The notes below the pieces were generated by a model, which was given only the letters and a program-made list of their open reading frames with translations, was not told where the DNA came from and ran no database searches. From the NCBI RefSeq assembly GCF_026571515.1, contig NW_026855312.1, forward strand, positions 124,001-188,000: 64,000 nucleotides of DNA, read 5' to 3'. The translations under genes and the position numbers were made by a program. The stretch comes from Ruditapes philippinarum. Its lineage: Eukaryota. This document shows positions 7,748 through 41,200 of the stretch, one piece after another (positions within the stretch are counted from its first letter, which is position 1; each line of letters starts with the position of its first letter).

Positions 7748-10700
7748 ATGGGTTTACTTAATCATATTTGGACATTAAAGCCAATATTGGTGACAATTAT
7801 AGCGTTTATTGCGCCAATAGTTCTTCTTGTGGATTACTCTGAAGATTTTGAAGTGGTAAGTAGGCAATATTTTATTTTAATATCTGCATGATCTCTTGTT
7901 CTGAATGTTGGTTGATTTATAGATTATCAAAATGATGATTCTTTCTCAGCCAATGTTTACATGCAAATTATGATTAATAGAAAGTTTCCTGACCCATGAA
8001 TGGATATAACATTCGATCTATAATATTATTGGATTATAAGATACAATTTAAAAGTGAATAGATGAATATAAAATGTTAGAATAAAACGTAGAAAAAATAG
8101 ATCTATTAGGATATTTCTCTTCAATTGTGAAAGAAGTTTTAATGTCAGAAACTATGAAATTCTTTGCTTGCTCGTTTTAATATAAAGGCATAAATCAAAT
8201 TTACGTCCTTGTTCTTTTTTTTCTATCCTTCATAATATTATCTTGCAGTAAATATCTTTAATCTATAAAACTTTAGTTGGAAGTATTTAATAAATTCATG
8301 CTCGTATGCGTTGGTATGCTCGTAAACACGATTGTTAGCAAATAAAAAATACATTGGCGACATCACGCTCTTTCTATAAGTTTATATGTTTTGCTGTAAT
8401 GTAATGTAGGACCTGTATATATAGACGTATTCATGAACACGTTATATAACGCTACAGAATATATCATAAGGTGTTTGAGGAGCGACAGAGACATGACATG
8501 ACATTAGATTTTTCAACTCTAATCATGCATAAGTCGTGGCCTAAACCATCTTATTTTTATCAAGCACAATTTATGCAAAAACGAACAAACAAACAATCAA
8601 ACAAACATCGACAAATCTTTAAAAGTAACAGACGAAAAAGGTAATCACCAAATTTTGATATTCTAACTTATTATTCAGTTTTGACCTTTCTTGTCAATAA
8701 GAATTTTGTACCTGCGGCAAGAACAAATTTACAGTTAATACCTGGGATGACTATCTTCATTAGCATTATTTTTGTGTGACCATTCAAACAGTTTCACTTT
8801 TCACTTTAAACGTATAACACGGTCAATAAAAGACGTAAGTGAATGTTTTTAAGCACCGAAATGAATCTTAGCTCAATATCTGACGCTTTGATTATTTCTC
8901 AAATTATGTATAAAATATATATAAAGATTTATACGCCAAAACATTATGCCAGTTTACAGGGTCATCGTCACGGATGTGACGTAATGACGTCATGTTGTGT
9001 TGCAACGTCATTTTATAATATTGAAGTTACATTTCAGATATTTTGGTTATTACTAGTATAACAAAAAATAAATGGCAATTGCGATCACTAAGACATGCGT
9101 GTATTGAAGAAATAATGATGCAAATGTGATTTGATGAAGAACAATAAAACAGATTATAGAAAAAATACGTAAGACCCTCGCGATTTTTACGAGAATTGTA
9201 TCAATTAAACAAATCTATTTTGACCTTTCGTGACCTTCAAAACATCTACTTTCATATAAATATATAAATACACATTAATATACAAATACAATAAAACAGT
9301 CGCGTCACGTATCACTGATCAAAAACTTATCTTGCAAAATATGCTTGTTCTTTAATGTTGATGAAGACAAATTGTCGAACATTTCATTTCACGGAGTAAA
9401 TGTTCTTTCAATTTCATCGGCAATATATGTCTTTATAAATAAACGACATAATTGGTTTGTTCGTTAATTAAAAAGAATTTTGTCTGTATTACGAGTCTTC
9501 ACTTTAAAGTATCAAGGTTTTGCATGCATTTATACATGTTTTTCGCTTGCAAACCTATAATCGTTAGAATTGAAGAATAAAGTAATACTGTTTACAAGAC
9601 ATTAAGTTAAATGTATACTTAATATCAGTTGTTATTTAAATCTCACACATATTTTGAACTTGAAAAGTACTTTGCATGTTTGTTCGTGCAGATCTGCTTT
9701 TATTATGTCACTTGAGAGGCTTGTTATTCTTCTTGTTGATTTGGTATCACGTGACAAGTAGTTTTTTGATAAAATTTGTTATAAAGTAGTTGCCATGTCA
9801 ACAAAAAGGAAGAAATAATAAACCTGCACTGTTATATGTAATTACCAATGACAGGCAGTGACTGGCAAATCTTCTGACGGCACATGTATGTTTATATTGT
9901 ATTGTAACAATAAATTATTGTTAAAGTTGTTACGACAACCTGGCCTATTAAAATAATTAGTAGTTTCAAAAAGAAAGAGAGCAAATAATGACACAGTTTT
10001 CAAGTTTTTCTGCATACACCATGTAGACGGAAGTTGAGATAGCGTTCATATTTATATATTTAATTGTATTTGAATTTAATTGATGAATTCAAGCGTTCCT
10101 GTAGCAGAGAAGAGTAAAAAGCAGAAAAAATAACTTCTATGTGCACATTCACATGACAGAGTGTTTAACATGTACAAGAATTAATGTTCTAATTGAACAA
10201 TTAATTTAGCAATTCCACTGACTCGCCGATAATGACGCCAACACGTGATAATACAGTGATAATTATTATTTACTATCAACTATAATGATTCAGGTAGCAT
10301 GCATTTATTTGATGCCAACAGATCGTTAAGGATAACATTTTCAATTCACTGAAATCTACAGTTTTTTTATTCAAGAAAACCTGAAGACATTAATGAATTT
10401 GATATGATTTATATTGTATTAAAATTTATATTGAATCTTGTTGATTTAAGATATATAAGATTGCTATACAGTCTCTTTTTAAATGTAAAATTTCTTTTGA
10501 GTACACACAGAAAAGCTTTGTTACATTTTAAAATGATCATACTATAGGTAAACATAGTATGACCAGCTGGCATTTTTTAGAAAGGATCAAATCAATTTGA
10601 CCAGTAAAAGGAAATGCAGCTTCGCGGACATTGTGCATTTTCTTATTCAAATTAGACATATTCAATACATATTCAATAAATATTCCATAAGAATTGCATT

Positions 10701-13700
10701 AATTTCAATAAATTTCTGGAATAAAATCATTTTATCAAAAGATGAGCACAATGTATGTTTAAACTTTACTACTGTTGATTTTTCATGCCATACGCATGTC
10801 GTGTCAATTAATTATTGTAACTAAAAGCATTTTATATCTAATTAAAATAAAGTAAAGACAATACTTCCTTAATTTAATCCCGACAAATTTTACCTATGTT
10901 GTCTTACGAAATGGTCAACCACGAGGAGTTCATGCAAGATATAAAACTAAAGGCGAAAACGTTTGTGAAATTTAAGTTCAGTTTTAATTCATTTTTGTAG
11001 ACCTATAGTGATACATTTTCGTTAACATTCGTGTAGCCTACTCTATTTCCTAAACAGCGTGACTTAGAAATGTCAATTTCAAATTAATTTGTTCATATCT
11101 TAAAAGTTTAGATCTTTTAGATTATGATTTACTTTAATATAATTAACAGTTAACAAGAATGATTGAAAGGAGCGATTAATTTAAAATCTTCAATGATATA
11201 GATCTATCGTCTTTACTTTAAGTACATATACCATATCAAATAACATTCTGATAAAGCTGAAAAAGAATTATAATATTACATAAAACATTGTCCTTATTTG
11301 TATCATTTGTATCAATGTTGGAGCAAATTGTCCAACATGAAATTAATAAAAAAAATCTTGCTAATTTTAATTCCAGCAATCAAAATGTGCCTACGTAATT
11401 GTCGTCATGGCGATACTGTGGCTCACCGAGGCAATTCCTATACCAGTAACATCTTTGATGCCGATCTTTCTGTTTCCGTTGCTTGGGGTTGCAAAGGCCA
11501 AGGACATAAGCTCGGCATACGTCACGGTATATCTTTAATACATTAATTTTGTCATCAAATATTTAAAATAAGATCATAGGTACCATTAAAAAGTATAAAG
11601 CTATATATGTCCTGTCTGTTGAATGAAAAAAGAAACTGAGCTTGATAAATCACGGCAAAAAGTTAATTTTGAAAGAGGTTAGGTATTTTTAGTGGTAATT
11701 CACTAGCATATAATCTTTTGTAAGGTTAGTAATACTTCAACAATAAGAACTAAGATATTTTTAGAAATAATTCCCAAACAAAAAATCTTTTGTTTGAACT
11801 AAGCTACTTTGAGTAATGATTCACGACCTTTTAACTTTTTGCAAGATGAATGCTATATTTAGGGAAAAAAAACATTATTAGCTAAATTTTAAGTGTCAAC
11901 AAAACGTTAAAGTTAATATGGCGACCTTCTTGTTTTACTGGTGCAGGAAAACCTCAGACACCCCTCTGTGCATTACTTCAGCCACATACGGGCGCCTGGA
12001 TAGGCCCGCAGACATTCCGTAAGCTTGCTGGAAACTTTCATCACATTAAAGAATCAAAAAGTTTCTGACGGGATTCGAACCAAGGCCGATGAGGGGCAAG
12101 TCAAATCAGCGACCTTAACCACTCGGTTTCGGAGGCCAATAGTTTTAGAAAAATAAAAAAGATTATGTAAACCTTAAACTGTAACTTATATTCTATATCA
12201 CTCACTATAAGCTCAATTCCAATTCAGGATACAACTATGTTGTTTTTTGGCGGCCTGATCATTGCAGTGGCTCTAGAAGAGACGGGATTACACACTCGCA
12301 TATCTTTGTGTGTGATGATGCTCGTCGGAGCGCAACCTATATTGTAAGTTTTCTATTTAGATGTAATAATTTGATTTTTGCCATTCAAAAATTAACATAT
12401 TGTTTCGCATCTTTGTTTCATGGAACTGTCTCTAAGCATTAAAAATATTTAATAGAACGATAACATAAGTTTAATTAGCGCGAAATTCTAGGAAAAAAGA
12501 ATATAGTAGAAAATCAGTTGTTCAATTGCATGTTAGCTCAATAGGTAGAGTGTTAGACTGTGGTTCGGGCGACCCGGGTTCGATTCCCGGACGGTGCAGG
12601 TCACTTTCATTGTGATTAATCATGAAATCGTTTCTACGGTCATTCGCATTGTACTTGCTCTTGCATGTACAGAAGTTTTAGTTCCTTGCGAAAGTGAAGG
12701 CAACTAGTACTGCTTGACAGCCTGCCCAGGAACGATGCGGGTGGTTGAACTGTGCTCTGGGGAATTCAATGTGGCTAATTGTCGTGATCCGAAGTGAAAA
12801 CTACCAACTCCACATCCACATCAATTGCATTATATTGTAAAAGATGATTACTTCTTAGCTTATAAATGTTTATTTTTCAATTAAAATAATACACATTAGA
12901 TTATTCAGGCGTCTTCAATTTGTATTACATGTTCTTGTAAAAGATGAATCATTTTACGTTGAACAAAAACTGGCTCAATGAAAATAATAGGTTTACAAAC
13001 GAAGAAATTAGCATATCTCATGCATGAACACATGTTAATCATGGTAATTAATTGTCTATGAATCACAAGCAATCTAGCTTTATATCACGTTTATCTGTCA
13101 ACATGCTCGTATTCTTGTATCGCTTAATGTAATACATTTAATTAGATACAAATCAAAATCACACACACACAAAAAAAAAGATCAGAATTATTTAAAGTAT
13201 TCGTTTCGCTTATTTGAAATTCATTTTTGTTGTGTTCTAGTAAATACAAAATAGCACTTCTACTCTGTTAGTTTATTTGCCTGGTCTGTCTGTACACAAT
13301 TTTCTGTTCGTTTAGGTGTCCATCTTTTTTGATGAATTGCTATTTTACTATTGTCGGTTATTGTCTAATGCGTTCAATGTCTTCTTCTGTTGTCTTTATT
13401 GTATAGATGGTATAGGTTTATGTTTGGGTAAGTAACCACAGTTGATAAGAATACACTGAGCCATCCACTGAACACATTGCATTTGTCTATAACATACTTT
13501 TCTGATGTTTTCTGAACCTAGGCATAATGAAACATATTTTTTTATTCAGTCTGATGGCGGGTTTGATGGTGACCACGTGGTTCCTGTCAATGTGGATCAG
13601 TAATACAGCAGCGACCTCTATGATGATTCCTATAATTACGGCTGTGATAAAAACCGTAAGCGAAGTACGGACAAAAACGTTATGTACGTATGACATACGT

Positions 13701-16700
13701 GCTTAATATTTCATCTTTATAAAAATATATTCTGTTTTGGATTTTATGTCAAAGACGACGCACATATTCACCCGGGAGCAATACTTCTGATAAAGAAGTT
13801 AAGTTTTTGCCAAGGAATGTTGTGTTACCGCATCCCTCATCATCAAGCTGTAACCATTTTTATGATGAGGGGTATATTAGGTTTGTGACAATGGTCACCT
13901 AAGTCTCCAAACTTTCTTGTCTTATTGTGTCCGTCAAAATCACATTTTGAATTGCTTATGTTAAGGAGTGTTTGGAATACATGTATTTCTTTAAATAAAT
14001 ATCAATCTACGGCAGTTCTTGAAATGCAATTCCTATCAAATTAATATATATTGCGACGTTTCCAATATTTTATTCACGTGGTAGATTTTAAGTATTAACA
14101 TGTATTTTGTGCATAAATAAAAACCCAAAATACAGCTGTATTGGTGTAGGTTTCTGGACAGCTGATAACAGGACCTTTACGATGTAATAGATTTGCATAT
14201 TTTGCATCTTACATTGTAAAAGTTGCATTAATTTTCTTTTGTTCATGTAATCAACAAAGTAAATGCTCTCTACATTTAAAATAACCCGTACTGTATACCC
14301 CTTTTATTCTTTAAAGTCACTTTTCCAGACATTCTTTAATGGCTTGTATTCCCATTTTACGATAGACACGGCAGATAATCCAGCATTTAAAGATGACGAT
14401 TCTGAAAATGGTGTCCCAAAAGACAAAATTGATGTCAGCAGTAACGGCGACGTGATGCCAGAATCAGAAAGGTAAAGCAAAATACAATTTAATAGCTATT
14501 TGAAAATTGTCAAAAAGTAATAGATAATCAATATTTTGCGACGCATAACAGGCAATATAAGAAAAAAAACCTGAATGCTCTAGACCATGATTATGAGGCT
14601 GTTTGAAACCATACAGACTATTTTTCAGAGTTAAACGTATGATATACAATAACAAAAATAAAATAAAATAAAAAAACCACTAGAACGTTTAAATAAATAA
14701 ATAATATAAATAATAAAGAAGAAGGAAAAATCTCTAATGATCGGAATGAATGTTAGGTGTACATTTTCGTTTTAAGTAATAGAAAATTTCGCTTTGCATA
14801 TTATTTCCTAATTTACAAGGGGGAATTATCAAATAGAAATATGTTCATAGGACACGGATGCTGGATTTTCAGTTTACGGACAGACAGACAGTCAGACAGC
14901 AGTACAACAGGACAAACAGCTAATGAATAATTCTTTATACCACACTCTAAGAATTGAATTGGAAACATATATCATATATCATTTATTAAGGTTGACATAA
15001 TATGAAACAGTTAAAATGAAACTCTTAAAGGTCACCCAGCTCGGCAAAATTGAACCGTTGATTGTTCTGTTTAACCGGGCTTGTGATAAATGCAAGCTAT
15101 CGTCTGCACCCTTATAGTACCTGGCACCACCGTCTTAGCCCCAATAACACAGACTTCAGAATTTGGAAACATATTTCAGCACGTGCAGTGATTCTTTTCC
15201 TTAAACAGAAAAATGATAAATAACTATTTGATATTTGTTATATATTGTTTTTCCTATTTTGAAAACGTGTCCATTCTCATAACGACTTTCTTTTTTGAGT
15301 TTGGATTTCTTCTTGGTGTTTCCAGTGTAAGAGAATGTTGTAAAATTTGATATATGATGTAATAGAGTACTTTAACGTTTATACTAGATTTTTTTTAAAC
15401 TGTTGGCAACTTATAAACTTCGTGAACTTTTTGAAACGTGCCCCAGATAATAACTAGATACAAACCTGCTGACAACTTTTGAACTTTTTGCAACGTTCCC
15501 CAGATAAACACCAGATTACAAAACTGTGGGTAACTTTTGAACTTTTTGCAACGTGCAGGTGAACAGCATGATATAGCTAGATGATAAAAGTGCAAATCTT
15601 TCGCTGAAATCTAACTTAAATTTCAAATAAGTAGTAATTGAATGCTGCAGTCATTTTACAACATTTAAAGTTATAAACCTTTTCAGTAACAGCATTCAGA
15701 CGAAACATTTATGTCTGTACCAAATACCTTTAGTTTACTTTAAAGGAATGTGTAAAGAAATGAAAAAGTAACTTAAAACTAAAGTAAACATGGGGACAGC
15801 CTACAACTCTTTAAAACATACATTGTAAACATGTTGAATTTCATGTGAATTAACATAAAAATGTTTAAACTTGAAAAAAGACAAAAGTATTAAATTTGCT
15901 TGTAGTAATAGATGTTTATAACCTGGGTACTTAACTTAAAGCAGATGTAGTAAGGTGTCGATGAGGAGAGCTATAGTCGTTGAGAGCTTTATGCGGCGTA
16001 ACAAAGCATGGCTATCATATATTAGGAACATATTTTTGCGAGTGAAAATAATGTCGATACCTTTTTCCCTAATATATTTCCCGAACATGTTTTGAAGGGA
16101 AAGCGATTCCTTCTTAAAAGGGAGAATTGGTTTGAAATGTGTTATTCAAGATCCATTTTACGTAACTGTTCATGCCCTTTATTAAATAGTAGCTTCATAA
16201 AGAATTTATGTAAAGATGTTCAGGTCGCCAGAACGAATGATTTAATGAACAGTTCTTAGAAATGATTAAGAGGTAATGAATGATTATCATTGTTTTTTTT
16301 TTGTAAATATACAAATGTGTTTTCCATGGGGTCAAGTGTATTCGTTCAATATAAGAACTAAAGAGTACCTAATGCCTCTTCTAAGCCTACAAGATAGTGT
16401 CAATCTATTGATAATGATGTTTGCCACTCTGTCTAAGTCTCATGGGTTCGTTCCAACATGCTTCCCTACTTGACACCAGTAATGGATTGTAAAATGTTTT
16501 GCACTCGACAGTGGTTCATATCATTCTCCAGCTTTCATCAAAATCGGACGTTTAAAATAAACTGACCCTAATGGAATTATTTGCCCGTAACAGTTTAACT
16601 GATTATTGTCGGAACGAACTGACTTTATATATTCCGTCATGATCCCGGCTGCATAAGAATGAGCAAGCAAGTCCTATATTAGACTACAAGTACCTTTTTT

Positions 16701-19700
16701 CATTCTCGCTTTAAAATAGTGTAGCTCATTGAACATTAATTTAAATGTGGAACCATATTCGTTAATTTTCTTTGATATGATCTAATTTTAGTAATAAAAA
16801 CTCATACAAAGTAAGTGATAAAGACATAGAGGCAGAGCTTCCTGAAGAGATGGACGATGAAATGAAAAGATATGCTAAAGCATTCGCTCTTTGTGTTGCT
16901 TACGGCGCTAATATTGGAGGTATTGCCACACTGACTGGAACACCACCAAATCTTGTCTTGAAGGAGAACGCCGATGAGTGAGTCATACCATACTTCCATT
17001 TACAGTTTGTATTATTATATGTATATATGTGTATATGATATATTGAAGCAGGTATGTTATATTTTAATTGTATAGTAGTAGATACAGACGTACATGGCGA
17101 GAGGAATTCGAAAGTTCAGTTGAACTACAGAGGCAAGCAAAGGCACTTGCTCTAAGTGTGGCATACGGTGCTAACATTGGAGGAATAGCAACGGTAACGG
17201 GCTCTCCTCCAAACCTTATCCTTAAAGAAAACGCTGATAGGTAAGTAGAATAACTTAAATCAGAAAGAAAAAAATAAATTCAAAACTTAATTCATTAATT
17301 ATAATGGATAAAAAATGATGAAATAATTGATATAGCATTTAGGACTGGAAAGCTTATTTTTTATTTGTCATTACATGTAAATATTAAATGAGTGAAATAT
17401 TCTAATTTTTGATTGGACGTAATCTTTTCCATTTTTATTCAAATTAAAGTAAATGATAAGTATATAAAAGTCATCTTATAAAATATATAGTAACCTTCAA
17501 CTATAATTGCATTACGTTCTGTATGGATTGCAGCCTTGCACGGTACGTTTAAATATTATTTTTCACTTTATTTCCTCTCCCTCAGTTAAACCTTCCCGTC
17601 CTTTACCTATATTTTGCCCTACAATATTTTACATTTTTGCTTTGGAAAAACATCATATGACATTTGTGTACCCATATGATGTAAATATATCCCATATACA
17701 TCAAGAGAATAGCATGTTTTGTTATGTTGGCAGTGGTGATAGTAAGATTTTATGATTATTTTTATTACTTCAAAGGATAGTTATTTCTTACATTGACAAT
17801 GGAAACAAAAAGTTTTATTGTAATAGCTTTACACTATTGTCACAGTTGTTATTTTATCATGTAAATCAAGATTTGTAAACATGTTCATTTTTTTCTGTGC
17901 AGCATATCATATTTCAAAGGTATGACCCGGAATGAAATAAGTGGTGCAACAAAGATGTTATTTAATTTTTTTCGCAGAAATTGTTACAGAAATGGTTTTA
18001 CATAAAAAATACTATAAATTGTACATATACATATATCTAGATATTTTCCCTTCATCGTTTTGCATGATACTACTGTTTTCCTTTAATACTTAGCTTAATA
18101 TTGATATAAACTGATACCCCGTCTTGTGTATAACCTAATTTTTACGCATGTGCCAATTTTGCAGTTAAATTTGGCTTAGATTTAAATTTAGAACCTTTTT
18201 TAAATCATTAAAGCTAGAGTTCTACCGCTTTCCTACCTTCCTAAATTAAAGGTTAATAATTTTGCTGAATATGTTTCAATAGGAAACAGAAATGTATGGA
18301 ACGCCAAATGATCATAAACTCAACTATTTAGGTCTCTCGACAATTACTTGAACCTTTCTGTCTGAAAGTTTTACAGAATTTCCATTACATAACCATTTGT
18401 TTACTGTTTCTAACAGTACTTTTTAAAAAAAACAAAACTGTTTTGTTATTTACTCATATAGCCATGTATGCCTCATATAAAAATGATTCAAAAAGTTGAT
18501 AGACGAATGATTGGTTAAATAACATTTTTTTTCGAAATACATTTTGTATCTGTATTTACATCTTGACTTCGAAAGTAAAATCCTCTACCATATGATTTTG
18601 ATAATTATATCATTATGTTTTAACATTTATACTATAAGATAGTTTTTAAAAGTTGGACAGTGAACAATTTTACAAATAAAAACTTACAATTTTATTTGCA
18701 TTAACTCATGTAATATCACAAAAATATAAATATACGTGTCATGAGATGGGGTAAGTTTCAGAACAGGTAAGTTATTTCTTATATCATTTTTATTTCAAAG
18801 ACATTTCAGTTATTCGTGAATAAGATTCAAGATTCAAATATATTTTTATATGGTAACGGACACATGATTCTTCTACAGTGTAATTTGATGAATATATATT
18901 AATATCAATATAACTCAAAGTCAACATGAGACAATTTATGGATTATGCATCATATTTACTCTGATGAGTCGAAACATGAGATGGCCCTGAAAGAGAAACA
19001 AGTATGTTTCATCATCATCATCAACAACAACAACAACTATAATAAATATTTCATCAAAATAAATATTATGCTTTAATTTTTTATACATAATTAGTTTATT
19101 AGATATACCATTTTTCGTAGGCAAAGATTTTGATTTTTTGTTTACTTTATAGATTTACTTTAAGAACGTCGGTGGTTCTATTCAGATGCCAGTTCGTACA
19201 GGTCTGAAGTACTGCAGGGACAGAGACATGAAGTCTTCTTTCACCAGTAAAGCCGGAAAGTCGTCATATGACCTCTACGTATTCTTTGTTTGTGCGACGT
19301 AAAACAAACCAAAAAATACTTAAATTAATTTAACTTCTTGGAGTTTTAAGTGATACTGACATTGTACATTATCAAGTAATATAAACATCTCTTCTTGAAT
19401 CCCTTGTTAGCTCATAAGCAGGCTAGCTTTTTTTCGTTCCTGTTAAAATTTGAACTTATGCAGGCGACGAGCAATTGGCACATGAGCTGTGTGAACTTCT
19501 ACAATTCACAATTATCAGATTCTCACACATCTTTAATTATATAAGCTGATATTTTCCCACATGCGCGTAAGTAAAATTCCTTTGCAAATAAAGATAACCG
19601 GAATGAAACATTGATTTTTTTTTTCAATATTTTCAGACTATACTCGGAAGCAGGATATAAAGGAGAATCCGAAATATCTTTTGCAAAATGGATGGGCTTT

Positions 19701-22700
19701 GCATTTCCCTTATCTCTGTTGACGGCAGTGATTGGTTGGTTGTGGCTTATTTTATGCTTTATTCGATGCGGGTATGTACCAATAAACCACGACTTGCAGG
19801 TTTCTGCTTACACCTATATGAAGTCTCTTGGTCGTGTATGTAATCTATACATTTTGTTTTATTGCCAATGAACAACTTTCTGTTCCTAAGTCTAGTGTAT
19901 TGTACTACTATTTATGAACGAAAATAATGTAATGTTTTGGGTATGAAAAGAAATATATTTCTTTTATTTATACCACAGTCAATGTGTAGCAATTAAAGTA
20001 TTAACATGGGCACACGTGAATGATTTCATACTTATGTGTCTAGTTTAGCTTTGCTTCGTTTTGATGTAAAATTTACACCAATGTATAGTTTAACATAATG
20101 ATGTTATACTTGAATGCACATTTTAACATGAAGTAAAATTGTCAAATACTTCAATGTACACCTGAATACTAATTAGGACTGACAAATACCTCCATGTACA
20201 TGTAAACCGGAATGGTTTGCCACATAAAACTTCCCATTCATTTCGATGAAGCATTTATAGTTTAAGATTATTTTCACTTCCACACAATTTAAAGCACTGG
20301 TTACAAGTTGTATATAACACTCGAGTCTTATCTTACACACTACTTTTAAATATTTTCCTAATATTAAGACATGACGGATTTTATCTTTAATCATTCAGTA
20401 AAAAATAACTTTGATCTATAGTTAAAAATACATGCTTTTGTCAAGGCTTTTAACAGTTAAAATGCCTAACGTAGATAGAAATATTCCAAAAGAAGATGGC
20501 ATTAATTAAGAGACGTTCAAATTCTTGTGATAATGCAGATTTATTAAGAAAATAATAATAAAATGTCTTTAAGATGATTTAAAATTGTTATATAATATTC
20601 AATCGTTGAATGTTGATTTAAAATTGTTATATAATATTCAATCGTTGAATGTTGATTTAAAATTGTTATATAATATTCAATCGTTGAATGTTGATTTAAA
20701 ATTGTTATATAATATTGTTGATTTAAAATTGTTATATAATATTTAATCGTTGAATGTTGATTTAAAATTGTTATATGATATTCAATCGTTGAATATTTAA
20801 TTCATTAAATCACAGCATATTTGATTATTATTTAATTTAATCTTTATTTCTATTAGATGTTGTAAAAAGATGGACCCTGAACAGAAGAAGGCTGTGAACG
20901 CCACCATTAGAGCTCAGTTTAAAAGCCTTGGTTTCTTGACGTAAGTAGATCATTCAAATTAAAGAATTTCCACCAATACTATTATTTATACTATTTTTTA
21001 AAAGTAAACCAAAAACTCGAATTTTAAAATGTTGTTGTTTTGTTTATTGTGTGTATGTGTGTGCTTGTGTGTTATAGATGTAAAAATATTTCAAAAAATG
21101 AGTATTTATTTATATGTAATATAGATATGTATTTGTGTCTGATATAAATGTGTATATGCATGCTATATAAAATGTTTATTTCACAACTTATAAAATATAA
21201 CCAATGAAGTTTCAACGTTAGAATCACTAAATGGTTCCGATAGAAATCATTCGAAACCAGTCTTCTTAAGTCTCGTTTCCATTTCTATAGTTAATCAATC
21301 CATATCAAATGCATATCGTACCATAGATTGCCTCGTTTTCATTTTCAGCGTACATAATTTCTTTAACAATTACATATCATATCTCTTAAAGCCTCGTTTT
21401 CATTTTTAGAGTCCGAGATATCTATATCAAATGCATATCGTACTTATCTAGCCTTGTTTCCATTTTCATGGCTAAATAAATCATATCAATTATTGTAATT
21501 GAAGTATCAAAGTTTCGTCAAAATGTCAAAAATGATGGTGTGAAATAAAGATGTTATTGTATTGTATTGTTGAGAACAATACTGATTCTATTGGACTCGT
21601 ACACATCTGCAAAACCTATACATTTGTTGCATTTGACTCAGCTAGCGTTTATTTTCATTTCCAGGGTTTAAAAACCGTATCAATTTCTTATTGTAGATTC
21701 AGCTTCAAGAATTAAAGTTATGTCAAAATGTCAAAAATGATTATATGAAATAAAGTGGTCATTATAAATTGTTGGGAACGATACTGTTTCTACTGGACTC
21801 GAACACTGCTGCAAAACCTGTATTAGACTCATAAAATATAGTTTGACATCTGTATTCTTGTCCAACAAATTAATTTTAGCAATGTGTATTAACCTGGTCA
21901 AATTTATATAAAAATATGAATGTATTTTATATTGAAATAATTTGTTTTAGTCTTGTACTCATTGTTAAATAAGAAATAAAAAATATGGTTTTCACAAATA
22001 TTTCATTTTTTAATTTAGTCTGGCCGAGCTCCAAGTTTTGATTGTCTTCATTATTCTGGTGATCTTATGGTTGTTTCGTAATCCACCTAACATTGACGGA
22101 TGGGGTGATATCAGCGCATTTAAACCCGGGTAATTATACCTACATATTAACGATTTTGTAAGCATGTGTAATTCTCTTTATGTATCAATTTACGGATAAT
22201 TTTCATAATGACAACTACTTTTCGAAAACATTATTATCACATATATCACTATGAAATCAATGAAACAAAGCTACAGAAAAATGTTACAGTAAAGAATATT
22301 CATGGTATTTACTAATTCGTTCAATGTTTATTTGTCGGCGATATTTTGATGGAAACGAAAAAGATAAAATGACACAAGAATATACGTACAATTAAATAAG
22401 AAAGCAAACGTTTTACACTGTAGAAATATTAAATGACTTAAAACAACCAACATGTCTATTTGGTATGTCAATTCACACATTGTTTCTTATGATTCCTATA
22501 CATGAGAATGTTTCTTATGTGTTTTTTTGCATGACAGCGCATGCGCATGTGATTGAGATAGATTGTTGTCAGTGTATTGCCAGTGGACTGTATTGAATTG
22601 CAAAACAATGTTTGACATGTTTGTATATGTGTATGTTACACTCGACTCAAAGCATGTGATGTTTATAATACAGCTTGGTCTGAGTCTTTGGGCTGTTCTA

Positions 22701-25700
22701 ATATTTTTATTTTATATGACTCATATGCATGTGTTTATGCACAGTGTTTGTTATACATTATATAGATATGTGTCAGACTCGACTCCGTGCATGCTCTTAA
22801 GTGTTCTGTTGTTTCTATTACCAAGGGAAGTTCCACAAATATTCTGTTTATTAAAAGAAGGTACGGTTAATTTATTCTCATATTTGCACAGTAGCGTACA
22901 CACATATACATGTATACATATACAGTCTTGTCTTTACGATTTTATGATTATGATGTGCTATGTGAAATAAATGATACTTGCTGATTTACAATGTAATATC
23001 AACAAAGCAACTCTAGCTTTGATAGTGAAACTTAACTTTAAGTATCATTAATTAAAACGCAATTTTACGTCATGAATAAAATCAAAGAGTAACATAACGG
23101 TCTATCTGGTCTATTTAGTATATCTTGCATGTCAGACAGGGTTGTCTTTTCTTACACCGGTACAAAAACAAACAATAAAAAATCAAAGCAATTTGTTTGG
23201 GTCTCAGAATGTCAGAAAGGTGAAGGTTTTGAGATTATAAATCAATTTGTTTTTGTATAGTGCCACCAATGTTTTCCAGTTCTTTAACTGTAGTAAATTG
23301 GCTATAAGACTAATTGAAACTCAATTCATTGTTTATTTGACTTTTAAACAATTTAAAAAAATGAGTTGCCTTAACTGGGATTTGAGCTCCAGACATCTCT
23401 CTTCCTAAGCGAGGGCCACGGTGAAGTTATATGTTAACGACCTGAAGAAAATCCTATTATTCTATATTAGGGTTTGTAACCCTTATTTCGACGCTAACAC
23501 ATATATGTAGCTTACTATAAGCATATATATCTATAAAGAATAAAACAATATTAGAAATCTTCGACCATTCGGGAACTTTTTTGCTTGAAAATTAATGCGC
23601 CTGTCATTTGACAATCTTTACGCAGTGATATCCCCTGATTTTTTTTCGGCGTTAGTGTACATATAAAGGGAAGTAACCGCTTCAAAAAAGCGGACTATTT
23701 TCGGCATTTGCAATTAACAACATCAGGGTCTGAAATTTCGACTCAAACAAATAAAAACCCTTCTTACTACACCGTAAGTAAAGTCGCATTTTGAATGACG
23801 TCATTCCCAAACGCCTGTGCTCTTTGGGTGACGTGATTTTTCTGTAGAGAATGAAGCTGGAAATTAATACGCTACTATAAATGATAATATAAGTTTAATT
23901 TCTCTAAAAAATGTTCGAAATATTATTTAGCCCTAATTTTCAAGAAAAGGAATCGAACAATGGCTTTCGTCATTGTTACAGAGCCTTGTTACTGTCCTTC
24001 AAAGTAACTTTAGGGCTAGTTGTTCTGGCGCCGTGTTCACTGAGAAAAGTTCAGGATCATAATCAAATTATCATGATTTTATTTTCACTGGTTTACGAAA
24101 CTAAAAAATTGATCGTATTTTGTTAACATTTAATGGTGCATAAACAAAATGTAAAAAAAAATGCCAATTTCAAAAAGAAATAACCCTTATTTGAAAGCAA
24201 AATAACACATAGCAAAACAAATACAAAAATAACCGGATAGCAATAAGGATCATTTTTAGGATCAGTATTTGGATCAACTGTAAAATACCCACCTTGGTTG
24301 ACTTTGTCATGGTTCAGAACTGTTCACTTTTTAGGGGAGAAGATGTGTAAGCGGCTTAGTACCTCTGTCGGTAGAGCCGCAATACGGTATTCCGAGGGTC
24401 CCAGTCAGGCTGCACATTTTTCTCACCCTGTGACATTTTAATTTCAGTTTTATCAAGTTGATATTCAATATTTAATTTATGAAGATAAAAAATGAATAAG
24501 ATTTTAGTTTCAAATTTGATCCTGATCTAGATCCGGATCCTTTAATCTCAGTAAATACTTACCCCGGTCTGTACCGAAAGCCAATCTATGACTCTTATAC
24601 ATGTAATATAAATGTATACTTACATACAAAAATATTTAGCATAATAATTTGCAGGACTCCCTTCCTATAAACCGATATTGACATGGCAAGCAGTTAGTGC
24701 TAAATTACCATGGGGAGTCATCATTCTACTTGGTGGAGGTTTTGCAATTGCCAAAGCCAGTAAAGTGAGTTCATGAATATAATTATAATATTATTATGTA
24801 GTCAGAAAAATTTAAAAACTAGACATATGTTCAGTTTACATTTTATATTGTATTTAAGCAAAACAAATACTTTGTGCATGCCAACTTTACATTTGTAAAT
24901 GATTTTCTAAACGCTTTATATATTGTTGTGAGCGAAATTTCAAAACAAAACGAGCAGAAATATAATTTTTACATTCGATACTTCAATACAATTTGATATA
25001 GTAATCAAACTGGTTATACTGAATGTGGACACTTGACAATACGCGCCATCTCTCATATCTAATTGTTTATTCTCTTAGTTGGGTTTACGTCGCACCAACT
25101 ATGTCTTTACTAGTGGAGGAAAACCTCATGTCCTCCTTCCTTAGAACCAAAGACGTTCCATAAGCTAGCTAGATAGCTGCTTACAGGAAAAAATTCATAG
25201 TTCCTGGTGGAATTCGAACCAACAGGTGTGAGAGGCAAGTGGCTTGAACTCTGCCACGGACGCCAAAAACATGCTGCAAGTTATAATGTTATTTGCATTA
25301 AAAGCGCATGCAATGTCAAACCTACTATGTCTACTACTTCATTTGTAATAATCAAATGCTTATAAACCATAAATTATCCTGGAATATTCATAGGATTCGG
25401 GATTATCTTTATGGCTGGGTAATCAACTTTCTACATTCGACAACTTAGATAATTGGGTTCTGAACTTGCTAGTATGTGTGATAGTCGCCGGTGCAACCGA
25501 AGTTACAAGTAACACTGCCACCGCTACACTTTTGATGCCTATATTGGCAGAACTGGTATGTTTCATTTATGGTATTTTAACGAACAAAACATGTGGTCAT
25601 CCACTTCTTGAGATTGAAATTGAGAGCAAAATGAGACTACTAGTCTACTAAACTCTAATGATTATGAGTTCAAATTGCAATACCAGTTGTTCTGAAGCTT

Positions 25701-27542
25701 GGTTGAGATTATAATTAAGATCGCCTCTCTTTTTTCCATCTACAAAAATTATAGCTTCATTAGCCTTAGCCTTTTGAAAAGAACTCTTTAATTCTCTCGT
25801 TGTTTCATTGCTTCCAAAGTATCACCCCTTTACCGTGATTTTAGAAAAATACTAATAGAATCTAAAATAAAAATCATTCTCTATTCATATTAAATGCAAA
25901 TTTCCCTTGCATGCTTAATATTTAACCAGAAAACCGCAAATAATTGGTCCTATTGTATTGTACTAATTACAAAAACCGTAAGTGCTAGTAGTACCTTGAT
26001 GTAAAATGTGGTCTCATTAATCATTCTTACATTTCATGTACCATCATTTTTCAGTATATGTACATGCTATGTGTAATTAAATTTACGTATCATATGCTGT
26101 ATAATGTATATGTAATGTTGTATTGAGCTTGTTATGCTTATACCAATTAATGCTCTGTTAAATGTAACAAAAGTGACGGAAAGAAGTTTTTAAGCTTCAC
26201 GACAAAACCAACATAGTGCGTTTGCGACCAGCATGGATCCAGACCAGCCTGCGTCCGCGCAGTCTGATCAGGATGCATGCTGTTCGCTTACCAACCCTGT
26301 TACAAGTAGAGAAACTGAAAGCGAACAGCATGGATCCTGATCAGACAGCGCGGATGCGCAGGCTGGTCTGAATTCATGCTTGTCGCAAACCCATTATGTT
26401 GGTTTTGTCATGGCACGTCTCAAATATTGTTGTAACTAAAAGTGACAACCGCAATTTACACATAGATAAGTATGATTATTTGGCTATAATAAAGTATATT
26501 TACGCCAATCGCACATGCCCATGATAGCTCGATAATCATTTGTGAACACTTATAGGGGTATTAAAGTACTGTATTTCAAAATATATGTATATACCAACTT
26601 TTTCTCAATCTTGACACTGCTGTAAAATAATATTGGAAGAAAAATATCAAAAGCGTGACATTGAAAAGTAAGATTTTTTATTATTTTTTTTCTACAAAAA
26701 CCAAAGATAGAATGAAAATGTAGAAACAATCATTTAAATACATAACCTGATGAAACTTAAAGTGATCACTCCTTTTTATTATTATAGAGCCAGGTCAGCA
26801 TCCGTGCTATCTGGCCTGGCGGGAGGCTTCCTTTATTTTATTGTTTTTCCGTGTTGGAACAATACATGTGACAATAGCCAGACACAAATCGTGGCCAGTG
26901 ATAAAAAAGAAATATATATTTTACAGGGTATTGCCACAGAAATTCATCCACTTTACCTGATGATGTCTGCAACTGTTGCTTGTTCATTTGCCTTTATGTT
27001 ACCTGTTGCTACTCCACCAAACGCCATTGTGTTCTCTACTGGTTACCTTACAATACCAGACATGGTAAGTAAGACATACATGAAATTATCTTTAGACATC
27101 TTCTGTATTTGTCAAAAAGTGTGATATATTTAAACTTATTCTTTAACCTATTTAGTTTTATTATACAATAAAATTTAAATTCTTGTCAAATAATATGATA
27201 TTATTTAAACTCGTCATGATCGAACCACTTAATGTAACATGTAATTTTAACTTAACTTGTCATTACCCTTCTAATGTTACATGTAGTATACAATAAAATT
27301 AGATGTGTTTTTTTAATATGAAGAATATTTGTAAGAAAATCCTCGAACATTCAATGTGACATAAATGTCTGTCAAAAACAATACAAAATGTCTCTTATAT
27401 ATTTTTCCAGGCTTTGGCAGGTCTGCCGATGAATATAATAGCCGTTTTGTGTCTTACATTTGCTATCAACACGTGGGGTAAATCCATGTACGATTTGGAT
27501 GAATTTCCGGAAATTTTCCTCAACCAGACAGCTTCTACTTAA
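7748..27542 (+). CDS. SLC13: SLC13/DASS-family Na+-dicarboxylate(/citrate) cotransporter, gene A (INDY/NaDC-like), 14 coding exons, ~588 aa with exon 6a or ~581 aa with 6b
   Basis: Exons, all GT-AG with continuous phase: 7748-7855, 11377-11526, 12228-12343, 13550-13683, 14366-14471, 16792-16977 (6a) or 17076-17240 (6b), 19637-19771, 20857-20940, 22019-22129, 22766-22860, 24655-24764, 25394-25555, 26927-27064, 27411-27542 (TAA). Motifs: [24 protein letters not shown] (first SNT), [38 protein letters not shown] (second SNT), [14 protein letters not shown]. Confidence 0.95.
11916..12137 (-). mobile_element. tRNA-SINE family 1, degenerate copy in gene A intron 2
   Basis: GGGATTCGAACC...GAGGGGCAAGT...CGACCTTAACCACTCGG is shared with the 29755-30017 copy. 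Confidence 0.7.
12530..12810 (+). mobile_element. tRNA-derived SINE family 2 (Meta-SINE-like central domain)
   Basis: A box TAGCTCAATAGGTAGAG and B box GGTTCGATTCCC, followed by GATTAATCATGAAATCGTTTCTACGGTCATTC, which resembles the conserved mollusc SINE core. No tRNA acceptor stem closes. Confidence 0.65.
15395..15557. repeat. ~57-bp degenerate tandem repeat, ~3 copies
   Basis: GAACTTTTTG(A/C)AACGT recurs at ~15424, 15481 and 15539; the first two copies continue CCCCAGATAA. Confidence 0.65.
16792..16977 (+). CDS. SLC13: SLC13 gene A exon 6a (TM5; TLTGTPPNL)
   Basis: ttttag| ... GA|gtgagt; 186 nt, phase 2/2; [61 protein letters not shown]. Confidence 0.9.
17076..17240 (+). CDS. SLC13: SLC13 gene A exon 6b (duplicate TM5 exon; TVTGSPPNL), candidate mutually exclusive exon
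   Basis: tatag| ... AG|gtaagt; 165 nt, phase 2/2, no stops; [54 protein letters not shown]. The exact acceptor is ambiguous (in-frame AGs ending at 17075, 17078, 17081, 17087). Confidence 0.8.
19162..19310 (+). mobile_element. tRNA-SINE family 1, 3' half
   Basis: GAACGTCGGTGGTTCTA...GTCTTCTTTCACCAGTAAAGCCGGAAAGTCGTCATATGACCT...GCGACGTAAAACAAAC matches the family tail. Confidence 0.7.
20575..20795. repeat. 39-bp minisatellite, ~5.5 near-identical copies, just upstream of exon 8
   Basis: Unit TGATTTAAAATTGTTATATAATATTCAATCGTTGAATGT; one copy has an internal deletion. Confidence 0.9.
21270..21820. repeat. Degenerate ~59-bp tandem repeats plus a ~110-bp local duplication
   Basis: CTCGTTT(T/C)CATTT recurs about every 59 bp. 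GTCAAAATGTCAAAAATGAT...TGGACTCG...CTGCAAAACCT occurs at ~21517-21618 and ~21722-21819. Confidence 0.6.
23178..23480. mobile_element. Dispersed repeat, copy 1 (copy 2 at 55568-55900)
   Basis: ATTTGTTTGGGTCTCAGAATGTCAGAAAGGTGAAGGTT is identical in both copies and similarity continues ~300 bp; minus strand has a tRNA-like head. Confidence 0.75.
24345..24440 (+). mobile_element. Short degenerate tRNA-derived SINE fragment
   Basis: A-box-like TACCTCTGTCGGTAGAGC, then GGCTGCACATTTTTCTCACCCTGTGACATTT. Confidence 0.4.
25077..25264 (-). mobile_element. tRNA-SINE family 1, degenerate copy
   Basis: GACGTTCCATAAGCTAGCTAGATAGCT...GGAATTCGAACC...GAGAGGCAAGTG...GCCACGGACGCC. Confidence 0.7.
26198..26421. 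mobile_element. MITE, same Sola2-like family, left end truncated
   Basis: CACGACAAAACCAACATAGTGCGTTTGCGACCAGCATGGATCCAGACCAGCCTGCG plus its inverted counterpart. Confidence 0.8.
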
Positions 27543-35289: not shown

Positions 35290-38200
35290 CTAACTAACAG
35301 GGATTGTCACATTCTTGTTAAATGTGTCTGGAAATGTATCGAGATTAAACATTGATGATCCCCAAGTGTTGATCCCGAGGGTGAGGCATAAAACAGCTAT
35401 AACATTCATTGGAANNNNNNNNNNNNNNNNNNNNNNNNNNNNNNNNNNNNNNNNNNNNNNNNNNNNNNNNNNNNNNNNNNNNNNNNNNNNNNNNNNNNNN
35501 NNNNNNNNNNNNNNNNNNNNNNNNNNNNNNNNNNNNNNNNNNNNNNNNNTAAATCTATCAACGAAAATATTGAAAAAATATTGTTTAAATTGTTTGATAA
35601 GTTTTGTTTTGGTAACATTGGAAAACAAAACAAAATCCTTCAACATTTGGAAAAGCACTAACGCTTTCCATCATACATATTTGATATTATTTGTCATAAT
35701 CTTACTTTAATTTATATTAAAATATATCTATTCCTGTCAAATAAATCATAAAATCCAACGAATTGTGATTAAAATAATGATAAGAAAAACACTGCTCCAT
35801 ACCATATCTGGAATAGTAAGGTAACCTGAAGAAAAGACGATGGCGTTTGGAGGTGTTGCAACAGGTAACATGAAAGCAAAGGAACATGCCACGGTTGCTG
35901 ACATCATAAGGTATAGTGGATGAATTTTTGTTTGTATAGCCTGAAACATAAAGGAGCAACTAGAAGCATCAACAGGGCAACAACAGGGCAACAACAACAA
36001 AACAACAACTAAAACAAATGACAACAATAAAATAAAGTACCTGACTTGCATGAAATCGCAAGAAAATATTGTTTGCAGACCATTTCATTTTGTTAAACTA
36101 AGAGGATTAAAACAGTTTCAATGACACTTTAGGAAATTCGAATATGCTATCTAGTACATTTTAAAGGAAAAAAAAAAGAAACGCAAACAATTGCGGTTCA
36201 TGATAATTGTTTTTATTTATTGACAATTCAGAAAGAAAAACACCAAACACACTTTTAATGAAACTTAATATTATAAAAAATATACTTTTACAAATACAAC
36301 TGCCATGTGTTAGAGTTATCTGACAAGATAATGAAATATGACATACCAGTTCAGAGAGTATTGGCATTAATAAGGTAGCTGAAGCTGTGTTACTGGTAAC
36401 TTCAGTGGCTCCTGCCACAATAAAACAGATAATCAAATTCATAATCCAACTATCCATGCTTGAAAATACCCGCAGTTCGTAACCAACCCATTTGGACAGG
36501 CCAGATTTCTGTAAAACGATATCCAATACAAAAGCCATAAGGAACATGTAATATTAGTACTTCATAGTTTCACTTTATGTAGTGCATACATGAGCTGTTT
36601 ATAATCAAATGGAATGATATTGATATATTCTAAAGAATGTTCTATACCGTGATGTTAACACTAAAAGAAATAAAGTAATTCAAACTAATTATTTGAAGTA
36701 ACGGAAACTTTTGTCTACAGTTTATGTCTACACTGTGGATGAAACGAAATAATAAATATATTGTACACGTCTGTCAAATCTAAGAATGTTACCTTTAATG
36801 ACAAATACCATCCAATCATTATCAATACGTTCGTAAGAAATCAAATCTTTTATTATAATAGTGACATATGTAAATGTAATAATGATAACAAATATAGATT
36901 AAACAAACTTCCGAATCAGAAGCGTTTCAACTAAATAATATAATGGCAAAACCGCTATAACATTCTACAAATGGTAAAATATTTTAGTTGAAGTTATAAA
37001 AGTGATTGATGGTTAAAATAATAAAACTTAATAGTGTACCAGTCTACCGTATGTTTAACATATATTTAAAGGAAGGAGAAATAAATAACTTAGAAAAAAA
37101 TGTCTTACAATTCATTTGTTGTGCACAAATTTAGAATACAATGTACTTTAAAAATGTTACGCCTTCGCAACTTTCTAGAGAAAATTGTTTTTAAATTTAT
37201 TTACGGTTGTCTTTGAAATATATGCTCGTAGCTTAGAGTTTTAAGTACGAAACCATATATATGTTAGTTCTTGTAGTTATATAAGGCACGAATCTTATAC
37301 ACATACCTTACTGGCATCTGCAATGGCGAATCCGCCTCCAAGTAGAACTATAACACCCCAGGGAAGCTTCTGACAAACTGTCTTCCAGTCTATGAGGGGA
37401 GTGTATGATGGTTTGTCTGAAATAAAGATTAAATTTCTAATATACTACATCGGAAACAGTCAGTATCATTGTTTTGGTTATACGAAAATAACTTTATTTT
37501 ATCCGTATATTTTATAAACAAGCTTTACCGTCTTTTGCAAGCCAAAAAACTCTAGGCTTTTCCGCCGGAAGTAGAAACAGAAGAATGCTGAGCAAAATGC
37601 ATGGTGTAGAATCTGAGACAAATCTGAAAATAAATCAAACAGGAAGTTAACTTACAAAATGTCTTATTTTTATGGAAAAAGCAGGAAACGTAAAAATCCA
37701 GACACAGTGCATTAATATACTACTTTTCTTTTTCATTTTTTTTACCTTGAATTTCACAAATACTTCCAGGAATAGTTTATCCTTATTTAAGATATGTTCC
37801 TTGTGATACATTAGTGACGCAGTCAACTACACGTATTTAAGTTATTTCTTTTTCTGATAAAATAAGCTTTGGGTAAGCTACTCATCAACAACTTTTTTTT
37901 TTTTAACTTTGTCACACAATAAATCGTTTATAATTATTATGATATTATATTGTTGAAATAAAGGCTAACAAACATAAAGTCTGTCATTTAACCTTTAAAC
38001 CGTTAAATTTCTTGAATGAACATATCTCTATTTCATTCAGATCACATTTAGGGAAAATGAAAAACATGAAGAGACTGAATAGAGAAAAGTGCAAACTATG
38101 ACAAGACGGAGTGCATCAAATATTAAACTTGGTGTCGCTTGGAGAAAAAAAATGTTTCCCATTAGCAGTCATCATAAAATATAACATTGGACTAAGTACT

Positions 38201-41200
38201 TACCCTTTCTTTAAAGAACCTGCACGTCCCCATCCTGGTATATTAGGAGGAGCTCTAAATAACCATAGACATACAAGACAAACAAAAACAATCATAACTT
38301 GAGTTTCTCGCAGCCTATAATAACAGAAAAAAAACAACATACTGGTCAACTGAAGCCTTGAATGGGGTGGGGGAGATATGTGAATCATTTGTTAAAACAT
38401 GTATATCACGACTACAGCTTTTGATGACTATTTATCATACAGCATTTGATGACTTCTTTTCACACACTTTCTATTGAACTTTCTTACTTTTAAAGATTTT
38501 ATGTTTGGTAATAATCATCACTAAAAATGTTGATTTTTAATGTATTTTGCACTTAATTTCAATTTGAAAAGGAAGTTTTTTATACATTCAGTTAAAATAG
38601 ATAAAAATCCTTTAAAGTTCAACAATAAAATAATTATTTGAATAAAGTCTATGCAAATCCACGTTTTTAGATTGTAAGATCTATGGTCAAATTATGTCAG
38701 CTAATAAAACAAAACATCGGCTTTCCGTTTTCATACCCATTTTAACATGGTGTTCGCAATAAATTGAAGGGGAAGGGTGACAAAAGTTAAACAAGCAGTG
38801 ATTTGTAGTGCTATACTTTCTTCAGCTATATTGCACCGTCACGCAAAAATAAGTTACATAAAGGAAATTTCAACCACAATGTGCGTTTAAAAAATACGTA
38901 CGATGGTTTGCCGAGCTGTTTCAAATGAGTTTTAATCGTTCTATTTATAGCTGCTCTTTCTTCTGCATTTGCTTTCTTGCAGCATCTACAAGTAAACATA
39001 TTGATAAATTAGTTAATATGAATAAGATACTTTGAGTTGGAGAAGTAAGTAAGTATTTGAAATATCAGTCAACTGTAGTTGTATTTTGGTAAAGATATTA
39101 ATTCTAATACGTCCATTTTCTGATCAATATTAGATACATACCGGGACGCCGAAAATACAGAATTCATTCAAAAAATGATAATGAGCACTACATTTTGATG
39201 TTGAAGAACAAAGAAAGTTATTAGATAAAAGTCAATTAATGGATATTCTACGCAAGGTGAAATACAAGTACTTTCATGGAAAATTCAATATGTGCACAAT
39301 ATAGCAATCAGTACTGCGTGTGATGGCTGTTACTTGACGCAAACATTTATCGTTTATCAACTATATTTTCCTGGCCTCTTATACAAATGCTCTCTTTTCA
39401 TATATAATTAAATTACTGTACGTTCGTAATTTTAATTTGCATGATTTATACGAGTTAAATACACGGATACTGTCAATTTGTAAAAACAATTCTCATTTTT
39501 CCTCAAATAATGGAATTGTGCGGAATTATACGAGATCGTATAGATTCGTTATCAATATTTTGACAGCTTATATGGCAGTGTTAAAGTGGTTGTTGGTATT
39601 ATAACCCAATATAGATCGGGTTATATAAACTTACAACGTTTTATACCAGGTCATATAATTTCTTTATACAATTAAATGAAAGATGACATTACCCACAGCG
39701 TATGAAGAGTAGAATTAACCACAACCATGCAAACACCGCAGTGAATAAGGACAGAGGGAAACCGAAACCCATCCATTTTGCAAACGATATCTCGGACTCT
39801 TCGCCGGTGTACAATTTATACAACCTACAAATATACGAAAAAACAGTTCAATGAGTTAACCCTGAAGATAGTCCAAGTTAAGTTTACCCTGAAGTTCGCT
39901 CAATTTTTTCCGTAAGTTTAAAAATTACCTTTAATCTGTATTCATAGGGAACGAGCGATTGAAACTATGAATGAGAGAACATAAGCAAAGCCCTACATTT
40001 ACTTAGCAGTTCATAAATCATATAACATTATGGCCTTAATATACATATAATATACCTCATTTGCATTTCTAGATCTAATATGACGTCACCCAGTCCATAA
40101 ATCGCCTACAGACCGGCTACCCAGTCCATAATTCTTATATGGACTGGATGACGTTATATTAAATTTAGAAGGGCGTATGCAAATAAGGTATTATATTTCA
40201 ATGTGTTGATAAATGATTCCTTTTACTGAATTTATTGTAATGTCTCACATAAATTTATTACATGTTGATCAAAAGTCATGATTTGTCTTTAATTTAATTA
40301 TACAGATTGTGAAATTCTTTAAGTCCGGTTTTTTTTGCCTAGTAACATAAAATATTTATTTTGATTAAAAACAAAAATGGTATATTAAATAAGTGCATGA
40401 TTTTTTTGCTGCATCGCTTGAAAATAATAAAACAATCCGACTAGTGTTTAAGATATTTCACACTGAACAAATAAAATCATTATTTGAAAGCAAATTATAG
40501 TACAAATGACAACAACAAAAGGGATGTAAGGATTTAGATTCGGTATAATATAACAAATAAAGCATGGCCTTGAGAGCAATATGCAAGTTTACGACTGGTT
40601 GGTCAGACTTAGGAAGGTCTATGGCCCGAAGCCATTAATTATATATTGTGACGAGTTTTCTTTTCAAAACGAAAACATGCAGTCCAAATTTAAGACGATA
40701 AGAAGAGAAATATATGCTTACTTATCAGCCTCTTGTTTTAATACAAGATTCGGCGGGGTACCAGTCAGGGTGGCAATACCTCCAATATTTGCACCATAGG
40801 CTACACTCAAGGCAAAAGCTTTAGCAATGCGTCGAATTTCAGGACTACTGGACACTGGTTCTGAATTAGCCTCGCTTTCATCGCGCTCAACATTCTCTGT
40901 ATTTGTGGCATTGACCGTGTAGAAATGACTGCAATGATGTGTAAAAAAGTAATGTTAATAAGGCTTAAAGATATACTATGCTCATCGTTGAGTAAAATAG
41001 TTTAATGTTTAAAAGTCTTACCGAATATGTCTAATTTGATTAAAAGAATGAATGAATTATGTATTGGAAGCTGCTTTCCCTATTACATGTCAAGTAAAAG
41101 CTGTCTTTTCTTTAAAAACAAAAGTTTTTTAATTACAGTATATGTTCATATTGTAACCACCTACAGTGTGTAGAATTTAAATGCAACATATCTACTTTGT

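Follow-up and report, generated by a model that had tools for sequence, protein, structure and literature searches.

Several transporter genes generate isoforms of different ion or substrate affinity by means of mutually exclusive tandem exons; exon 4 of SLC12A1 (NKCC2), with its variants A, B, and F, and the alternative exons of SLC7A2 (CAT-2A/2B) are examples. Research on epilepsy, metabolic disease, and lifespan has targets in the SLC13 family (NaCT, NaDC1, NaDC3, and INDY), and mutagenesis is still being used to work out how its binding pocket discriminates between citrate and dicarboxylates. Full-text literature searches found no mutually exclusive exon pair described in SLC13/INDY carriers or in the clam Ruditapes philippinarum; genome-wide surveys of tandem-duplicated mutually exclusive exons are available (PMC8373072, PMC9741552, PMC5740500).

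A short loop between transmembrane segments 5a and 5b (the TM5a-b loop) contributes to the binding site of these carriers. Na1 of VcINDY is coordinated by the G199 carbonyl, and S200 forms a hydrogen bond with N151, the residue that holds succinate (PMC5413979); the S200A substitution nearly abolishes transport, with poor substrate binding (PMC13394699), and in humanised VcINDY the S200T substitution gives a hydrogen bond to citrate (PMC5413979). T227 and G228 of human NaCT form hydrogen bonds with the substrate analogue PF2 (PMC13370374), the T227M substitution abolishes citrate uptake, and G219 and T227 are sites of common epilepsy mutations (PMC6063891). The citrate site of Drosophila INDY is lined by T245-A246-T247 of the same loop (PMC11782487).

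We describe here an SLC13 gene of R. philippinarum (gene A), for a Na+-coupled di/tricarboxylate transporter, in which the exon for this loop is present as two adjacent copies, 6a and 6b. The two copies are very probably a real either/or exon switch, ordinary in kind, and it is probable that the one gene gives rise to two transporters identical except for the TM5 cassette, the mature mRNA carrying either 6a or 6b, with a functional shift as a likely consequence.

Gene A and its paired TM5 exons

The window, which is the whole stretch of 64,000 nucleotides analysed, corresponds to G000:C3799:124001-188000 of the 1.41-Gb R. philippinarum assembly; positions without a contig name refer to the window. 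Gene A was located by tblastn of bivalve SLC13 proteins and the R. philippinarum protein P0158 on the window, and its limits are those of the first and last coding matches:

7748-27539, plus strand: gene A, an SLC13/DASS transporter of about 15 coding exons and 588 aa

The gene is represented in RefSeq by XP_060587393.1/XP_060587394.1 (P0158), named "solute carrier family 13 member 2-like". The two accessions are the same protein, in the 6a form only, and the gene model lacks exon 6b. P0158 aligns with the plus-strand exons at 87-100% identity; values at the low end come from local alignments that overrun exon ends. It has a full-length match to the Pfam family Na_sulph_symp (PF00939; 276 bits, cut-off 27), a profile that also matches the window exon by exon, and it contains both SNT motifs (WISNTAAT and VTSNTATA); the G-[ST]-P-P-N loop of TM5a-b is GTPPN in 6a and GSPPN in 6b. 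With this profile, the two Ser-Asn-Thr motifs, and the TM5a-b loop, gene A belongs to the SLC13/DASS family.

The region of the duplicated exon is organised as follows (a slash marks each splice junction):

14359 (approximate)-14471, plus strand: exon 5, the common upstream exon, encoding a variable cytoplasmic loop; ends AG/gtaaag with two split-codon bases
16792-16977, plus strand: exon 6a, 186 nt; acceptor ttttag/T, donor GA/gtgagt; 100% match to P0158 residues 205-267
16978-17075, plus strand: AT-rich intron between 6a and 6b, 98 nt, gtgagt...tatag
17076-17240, plus strand: exon 6b, 165 nt; acceptor tatag/T, consensus donor AG/gtaagt; not in the R. philippinarum RefSeq protein
19637-19775 (end approximate), plus strand: exon 7, the common downstream exon; acceptor ttttcag/A

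Exons 6a and 6b both read through without stops in the frame shared with exons 5 and 7. Each opens with the last base of a split Ser codon, and the split codon at the 3' end is completed by exon 7 to give Glu (GA+A) after 6a and Arg (AG+A) after 6b. They are adjacent homologous exons of the same phase, with canonical splice sites and open frames; the coordinates, the 98-nt spacing, the shared phase, and the donors gtgagt and gtaagt reported in an earlier note on this DNA all hold on re-reading of the sequence and translation. The homology lies in a core of 34 codons, 5' of which the peptides encoded by 6a and 6b are unrelated.

The acceptor of 6b (17072-17081) is situated within a tag-tag-tag run with three in-frame AGs at 3-nt spacing, an arrangement of the NAGNAG type through which the 5' end of 6b transcripts might vary by one or two codons.

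Age and conservation of the two exon types

The last 34 codons of 6a and 6b comprise 10 identical codons, 19 with synonymous differences, and 5 with non-synonymous ones (F/L, C/S, L/V, T/S, and V/I); this codon-by-codon comparison reproduces exactly the 29 identical residues of 34, the 19 synonymous codons, and the five replacements counted earlier. The Nei-Gojobori estimates for these 34 codons are 0.815 for pS, which is saturated, and 0.080 for pN (pN/pS of about 0.1). The intron sequences flanking the two exons have 32-42% ungapped identity and are no longer alignable, which rules out an assembly duplicate or a recent copy. Judged by their sequences, 6a and 6b arose by an old tandem duplication, and both copies have been kept as coding sequence under purifying selection; their resemblance is not due to chance. 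The earlier note had proposed as much, and the proposal is borne out by the difference between pS and pN and by the conservation of both exon types across clams.

The orthologue in Mercenaria mercenaria, recovered by region searches that started from full-length bivalve proteins, has two RefSeq isoforms, both computed models: X1 (XP_045172066.2, P0208, 602 aa) and X2 (XP_045172067.2, P0161, 587 aa), which score 268 and 269 bits, respectively, against PF00939. By alignment and direct comparison, X1 and X2 have an identical prefix of 209 aa and an identical suffix of 324 aa and differ in a single replaced block, 69 aa in X1 and 54 aa in X2, whose limits coincide exactly with the limits of exons 6a and 6b in the window. 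The X1 block, which begins DKKSYKV, is of the 6a type (TLTGTPPN); the X2 block is of the 6b type (TVTGSPPN).

Constraint between the two clams was measured as protein identity, which is 82% for 6a and 83% for 6b, with values of 81% for the N-terminal part and 90% for the C-terminal part of the rest of the protein; identity between types (6a versus 6b) is 60-65%. The type-specific residues F/L, L/V, and T/S are retained in both clams, and the 6b-specific N-terminal stretch RRTW(R/L)(E/D)EFE is conserved at the protein level, although it is non-homologous to 6a. A search of 1.8 billion representative proteins, for which 6b was the sole query, added a third species: P0001 (ENA), a genomic open reading frame of 69 aa, is 87% identical to 6b over all 54 residues. 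The match takes in the 6b-specific stretch RRTW.DEFESSVELQRQ, and P0001 ends at the same ...DR followed by a stop that is created by the 6b donor AG/GTAA. In all three species 6b has an open frame and a preserved donor, free of the stops in relatives that the earlier note had named as grounds against its reading.

In a tree of TM5 exons built on a 44-residue core, 6b of R. philippinarum, 6b of M. mercenaria, and P0001 form one clade (support 97/92), in which the R. philippinarum branch is the shortest (0.043), and 6a of the two clams forms another (83/84). Since Mercenaria shares both exon types and the exons group by type, the duplication is older than the Ruditapes-Mercenaria split, and both versions have been under the same constraint since then. 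Both copies are thus conserved in other species and under purifying selection, and 6b, on the same comparisons, is not a pseudoexon.

Searches were run with single exons or with public proteins. In a wider region search of the protein collection, transcript-derived orthologues of gene A came from the two RefSeq species only. When the 6b-type block of Mercenaria X2 was itself used as the query of a region search, it was the only sequence returned, a result that, with limited word sampling, is no evidence of absence. The isoform sets of Dreissena and Gigantopelta were considered as instances of the same event and rejected, the fetched isoforms having the same TM5 exon. Multi-stretch matches from the representative search were likewise set aside: P0003, P0023, P0034, and P0075 are unrelated repeat proteins, and P0015 is a model with a duplicated segment.

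Proposed exon choice and the carboxylate site

Exon 6a aligns to residues 193-233 of human NaCT (Thr to T227, GG to G219/G220) and to the equivalent stretch of NaDC1, NaDC3, NaS1, and VcINDY. The assignment of the duplicated segment to the TM5a-5b loop, with the Thr/Ser position corresponding to NaCT T227 and VcINDY S200, was made in the earlier note and holds in the alignment; the position adjoins the Gly whose carbonyl coordinates Na1 (PMC5413979, PMC13370374). The T253S substitution in NaDC3, a Thr-to-Ser change as from 6a to 6b, suppresses transport (PMC5413979).

An AlphaFold model of the 6b-type isoform of Mercenaria (pLDDT 86, pTM 0.84) has a helix at residues 223-245, a break at 246-251 (VTGSPP), and a helix at 252-267, with pLDDT of 88-96 in this region. 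Its best fold matches in the PDB are NaDC3, NaS1, NaCT, INDY, and VcINDY (E-values 1e-34 to 1e-15), with TM-scores of 0.86-0.93 to NaDC3 and NaCT. The elevator fold, with two helix hairpins and broken TM5 and TM10, is present in this model; since the model is confident and superposes on NaDC3, NaS1, NaCT, and INDY, 6b is predicted to be compatible with the fold, and to encode TM5a, the TM5a-b loop, and the start of TM5b.

At the Thr/Ser position, 50 of 61 lophotrochozoan homologues have T and 11 have S; at the L/V position two residues before it, 53 have L and only 2 have V, so 6b carries the derived state. The G and N of the TM5a-b loop are invariant in the 61 homologues, and neither 6a nor 6b lacks any of the invariant family residues (GG, G, and PN). 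Since single-exon homologues may have either residue here, the Thr/Ser swap is a conservative one and may have little effect.

In the mechanism that we propose, splicing would put either 6a or 6b between exons 5 and 7, giving two carriers with a common scaffold and a common second half of the binding site, each with its own TM5 half-site and preceding cytoplasmic segment. The swap would turn the loop TLTG-T-PPN into TVTG-S-PPN, alter three further helix residues, and give the cytoplasmic stretch before TM5 an unrelated sequence. The Thr/Ser residue, which comes after the Gly whose carbonyl is expected to bind Na1, would contact the substrate or the Asn that holds it, so that the two carriers are likely to differ in how tightly they bind substrate, in their preference between citrate and dicarboxylates, or in their activation by Na+; the direction of the difference is not predictable from sequence. 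The divergent N-terminal part of the cassette may alter regulation.

The presence of exactly one exon per transcript is seen in the annotated Mercenaria isoforms; we infer the same for R. philippinarum, in which 6b would be spliced and the isoforms would differ in affinity or specificity. The mutually exclusive reading put forward in the earlier note gains comparative support in that X1 and X2 swap exactly the 6a- and 6b-type blocks and that both types are equally conserved. At 186 and 165 nt, both exons have lengths divisible by 3, so that the inclusion or the skipping of both exons stays in frame; frame or nonsense-mediated decay (NMD) therefore cannot police the choice and is excluded as the mechanism of exclusivity. 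Every splice site around 6a and 6b is of the U2 type (GT-AG), and the intron, at 98 nt, is not clearly shorter than splicing allows. An inverted-repeat scan of 14400-19700 revealed no convincing docking/selector pairing, giving only AT-rich matches of 70-86% that are no better than chance. A hairpin in the AT-rich intron between the exons (16995-17095), which would bury the 6b acceptor, was rejected as evidence (z = -1.5, with 15 of 200 shuffles folding as well).

The lengths that make frame uninformative would also permit transcripts with both exons (and hence a duplicated TM5) or with neither, or a 6b cassette added after 6a; the 6a-6b junction would read GA+T (Asp) in frame, the 98-nt intron is spliceable in principle, and no mechanism of exclusivity was found in the scans. 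Mercenaria, however, is annotated with two single-exon forms only, with a repeated TM5 helix-break-helix the remaining transport domain would have inverted topology, and each exon retains the invariant GG, G, and PN expected if each works alone; we consider such non-exclusive use very unlikely. Somewhat less remote, though still improbable, is a history in which 6b is a conserved alternative exon of the clade that R. philippinarum has stopped using or uses at trace level, leaving effectively one transporter. The R. philippinarum RefSeq models contain 6a only, and the protein collection held no transcript-derived protein of this species with 6b, a blank that is weak evidence with searches limited by word sampling and length windows. 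Against this loss, 6b of R. philippinarum is intact, with a consensus donor and the short branch described above, and matches its orthologues at 83-87% identity, no less well than 6a does, so silencing would have to be very recent.

The reading to which we give the least credence treats Mercenaria X2 as an artefact of homology-guided prediction, with 6b conserved for a non-coding reason or as a slowly decaying pseudoexon. XP_ records are indeed computed models, but the low pN/pS with saturated synonymous sites, the open frame and donor kept in three species, and the protein-level conservation of the RRTW(R/L)(E/D)EFE stretch all argue against it; non-coding conservation would not spare amino acids while third positions saturate. 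An either/or switch between 6a and 6b accordingly remains the reading that we prefer.

Other TM5 exon copies and comparison with known systems

Gene B, a paralogous SLC13 gene lying tail-to-tail with gene A on the minus strand (49426-35293), has a single TM5 exon at 40724-40912. An assembly gap (a run of N at 35415-35549) adjoins its last coding exon (35293-35412), and the start of this exon may be cut.

Copies of the TM5 exon in further R. philippinarum paralogues are located on other parts of the assembly:

G000:C12791 100743-100874 (L008:744-875) and 98565-98711 (L001:8566-8712), minus strand: tandem TM5 exon pair in a distant SLC13 paralogue
G000:C3799:250066-250197 (L002) and G000:C10164:52776-52907 (L003): TM5 exon of a third paralogue, identical in sequence at the two places

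The two exons on C12791 are about 2 kb apart, are both open, and both end GAT AT/GTAAGT. They have pS of 0.99 and pN of 0.10 and are sisters in the exon tree (98/94); as each other's closest relatives, they stem from an independent old duplication, and they are a candidate second exclusive-exon pair. The third paralogue (XP_060587377.1 / XP_060555751.1) has Ser as the only version at the Thr/Ser position (TLTGSPPNLVF), and the two contigs that carry it may be haplotigs of one locus. Outside the molluscs, the ostracod Cyprideis torosa has an SLC13 gene model (CAD7227426.1, P0002) with three consecutive copies of the TM5 exon at residues ~251-410, probably an unrecognised three-way exclusive-exon cluster that the predictor has read through.

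Recurrent duplication of the TM5 exon suggests that diversification of SLC13 carriers favours the TM5 half-site. A stronger form of this idea, in which invertebrate SLC13 genes (gene A of venerids, the C12791 paralogue, and the three-copy ostracod gene) have repeatedly evolved the TM5a-b cassette as a swap module that in each case switches substrate selectivity (for instance between citrate and C4-dicarboxylates) or Na+ affinity by altering the Thr/Ser residue and its neighbours at the Na1/substrate site, is tentative, and we regard it as doubtful; if it were true, evolution would have performed the experiments of VcINDY S200T and NaDC3 T253S many times over. Exons 6a and 6b provide a natural, selection-tested pair of pockets in an otherwise identical protein, and they differ at the very residue to which VcINDY S200T, NaDC3 T253S, and NaCT T227M point. 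Succinate and other carboxylates accumulate in anaerobiosis, and one may speculate that a switchable carboxylate carrier could matter for the tidal hypoxia of clams.

The Mercenaria isoform pair was already public in RefSeq, uninterpreted, and exclusive exons that retune the binding site of a transporter are a classical kind of event. Gene A resembles the substitution events derived from tandem exon duplication that have been surveyed elsewhere (PMC8373072, PMC9741552, PMC9013439) in its old duplication, in the purifying selection on both copies, and in isoforms that differ in one homologous block at a functionally critical site; unlike those events, it is restricted to venerid clams, its family is absent from the lists, and the mechanism of exclusivity is not apparent. 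As in NKCC2 and CAT-2, tandem-duplicated exons of the same length class and phase encode a membrane segment that lines the binding site, with one exon predicted per transcript. In contrast to these two transporters, the clam gene encodes a carrier of the elevator-type DASS class, has its cassette in the TM5a-b helix break beside Na1, and has two variants only. With NaCT (SLC13A5), NaDC3 (SLC13A3), NaDC1 (SLC13A2), and Drosophila INDY, it shares the family (PF00939), the fold, and both SNT motifs; whereas Thr is fixed at the loop position in the vertebrate proteins among these, the clam gene offers Thr or Ser.
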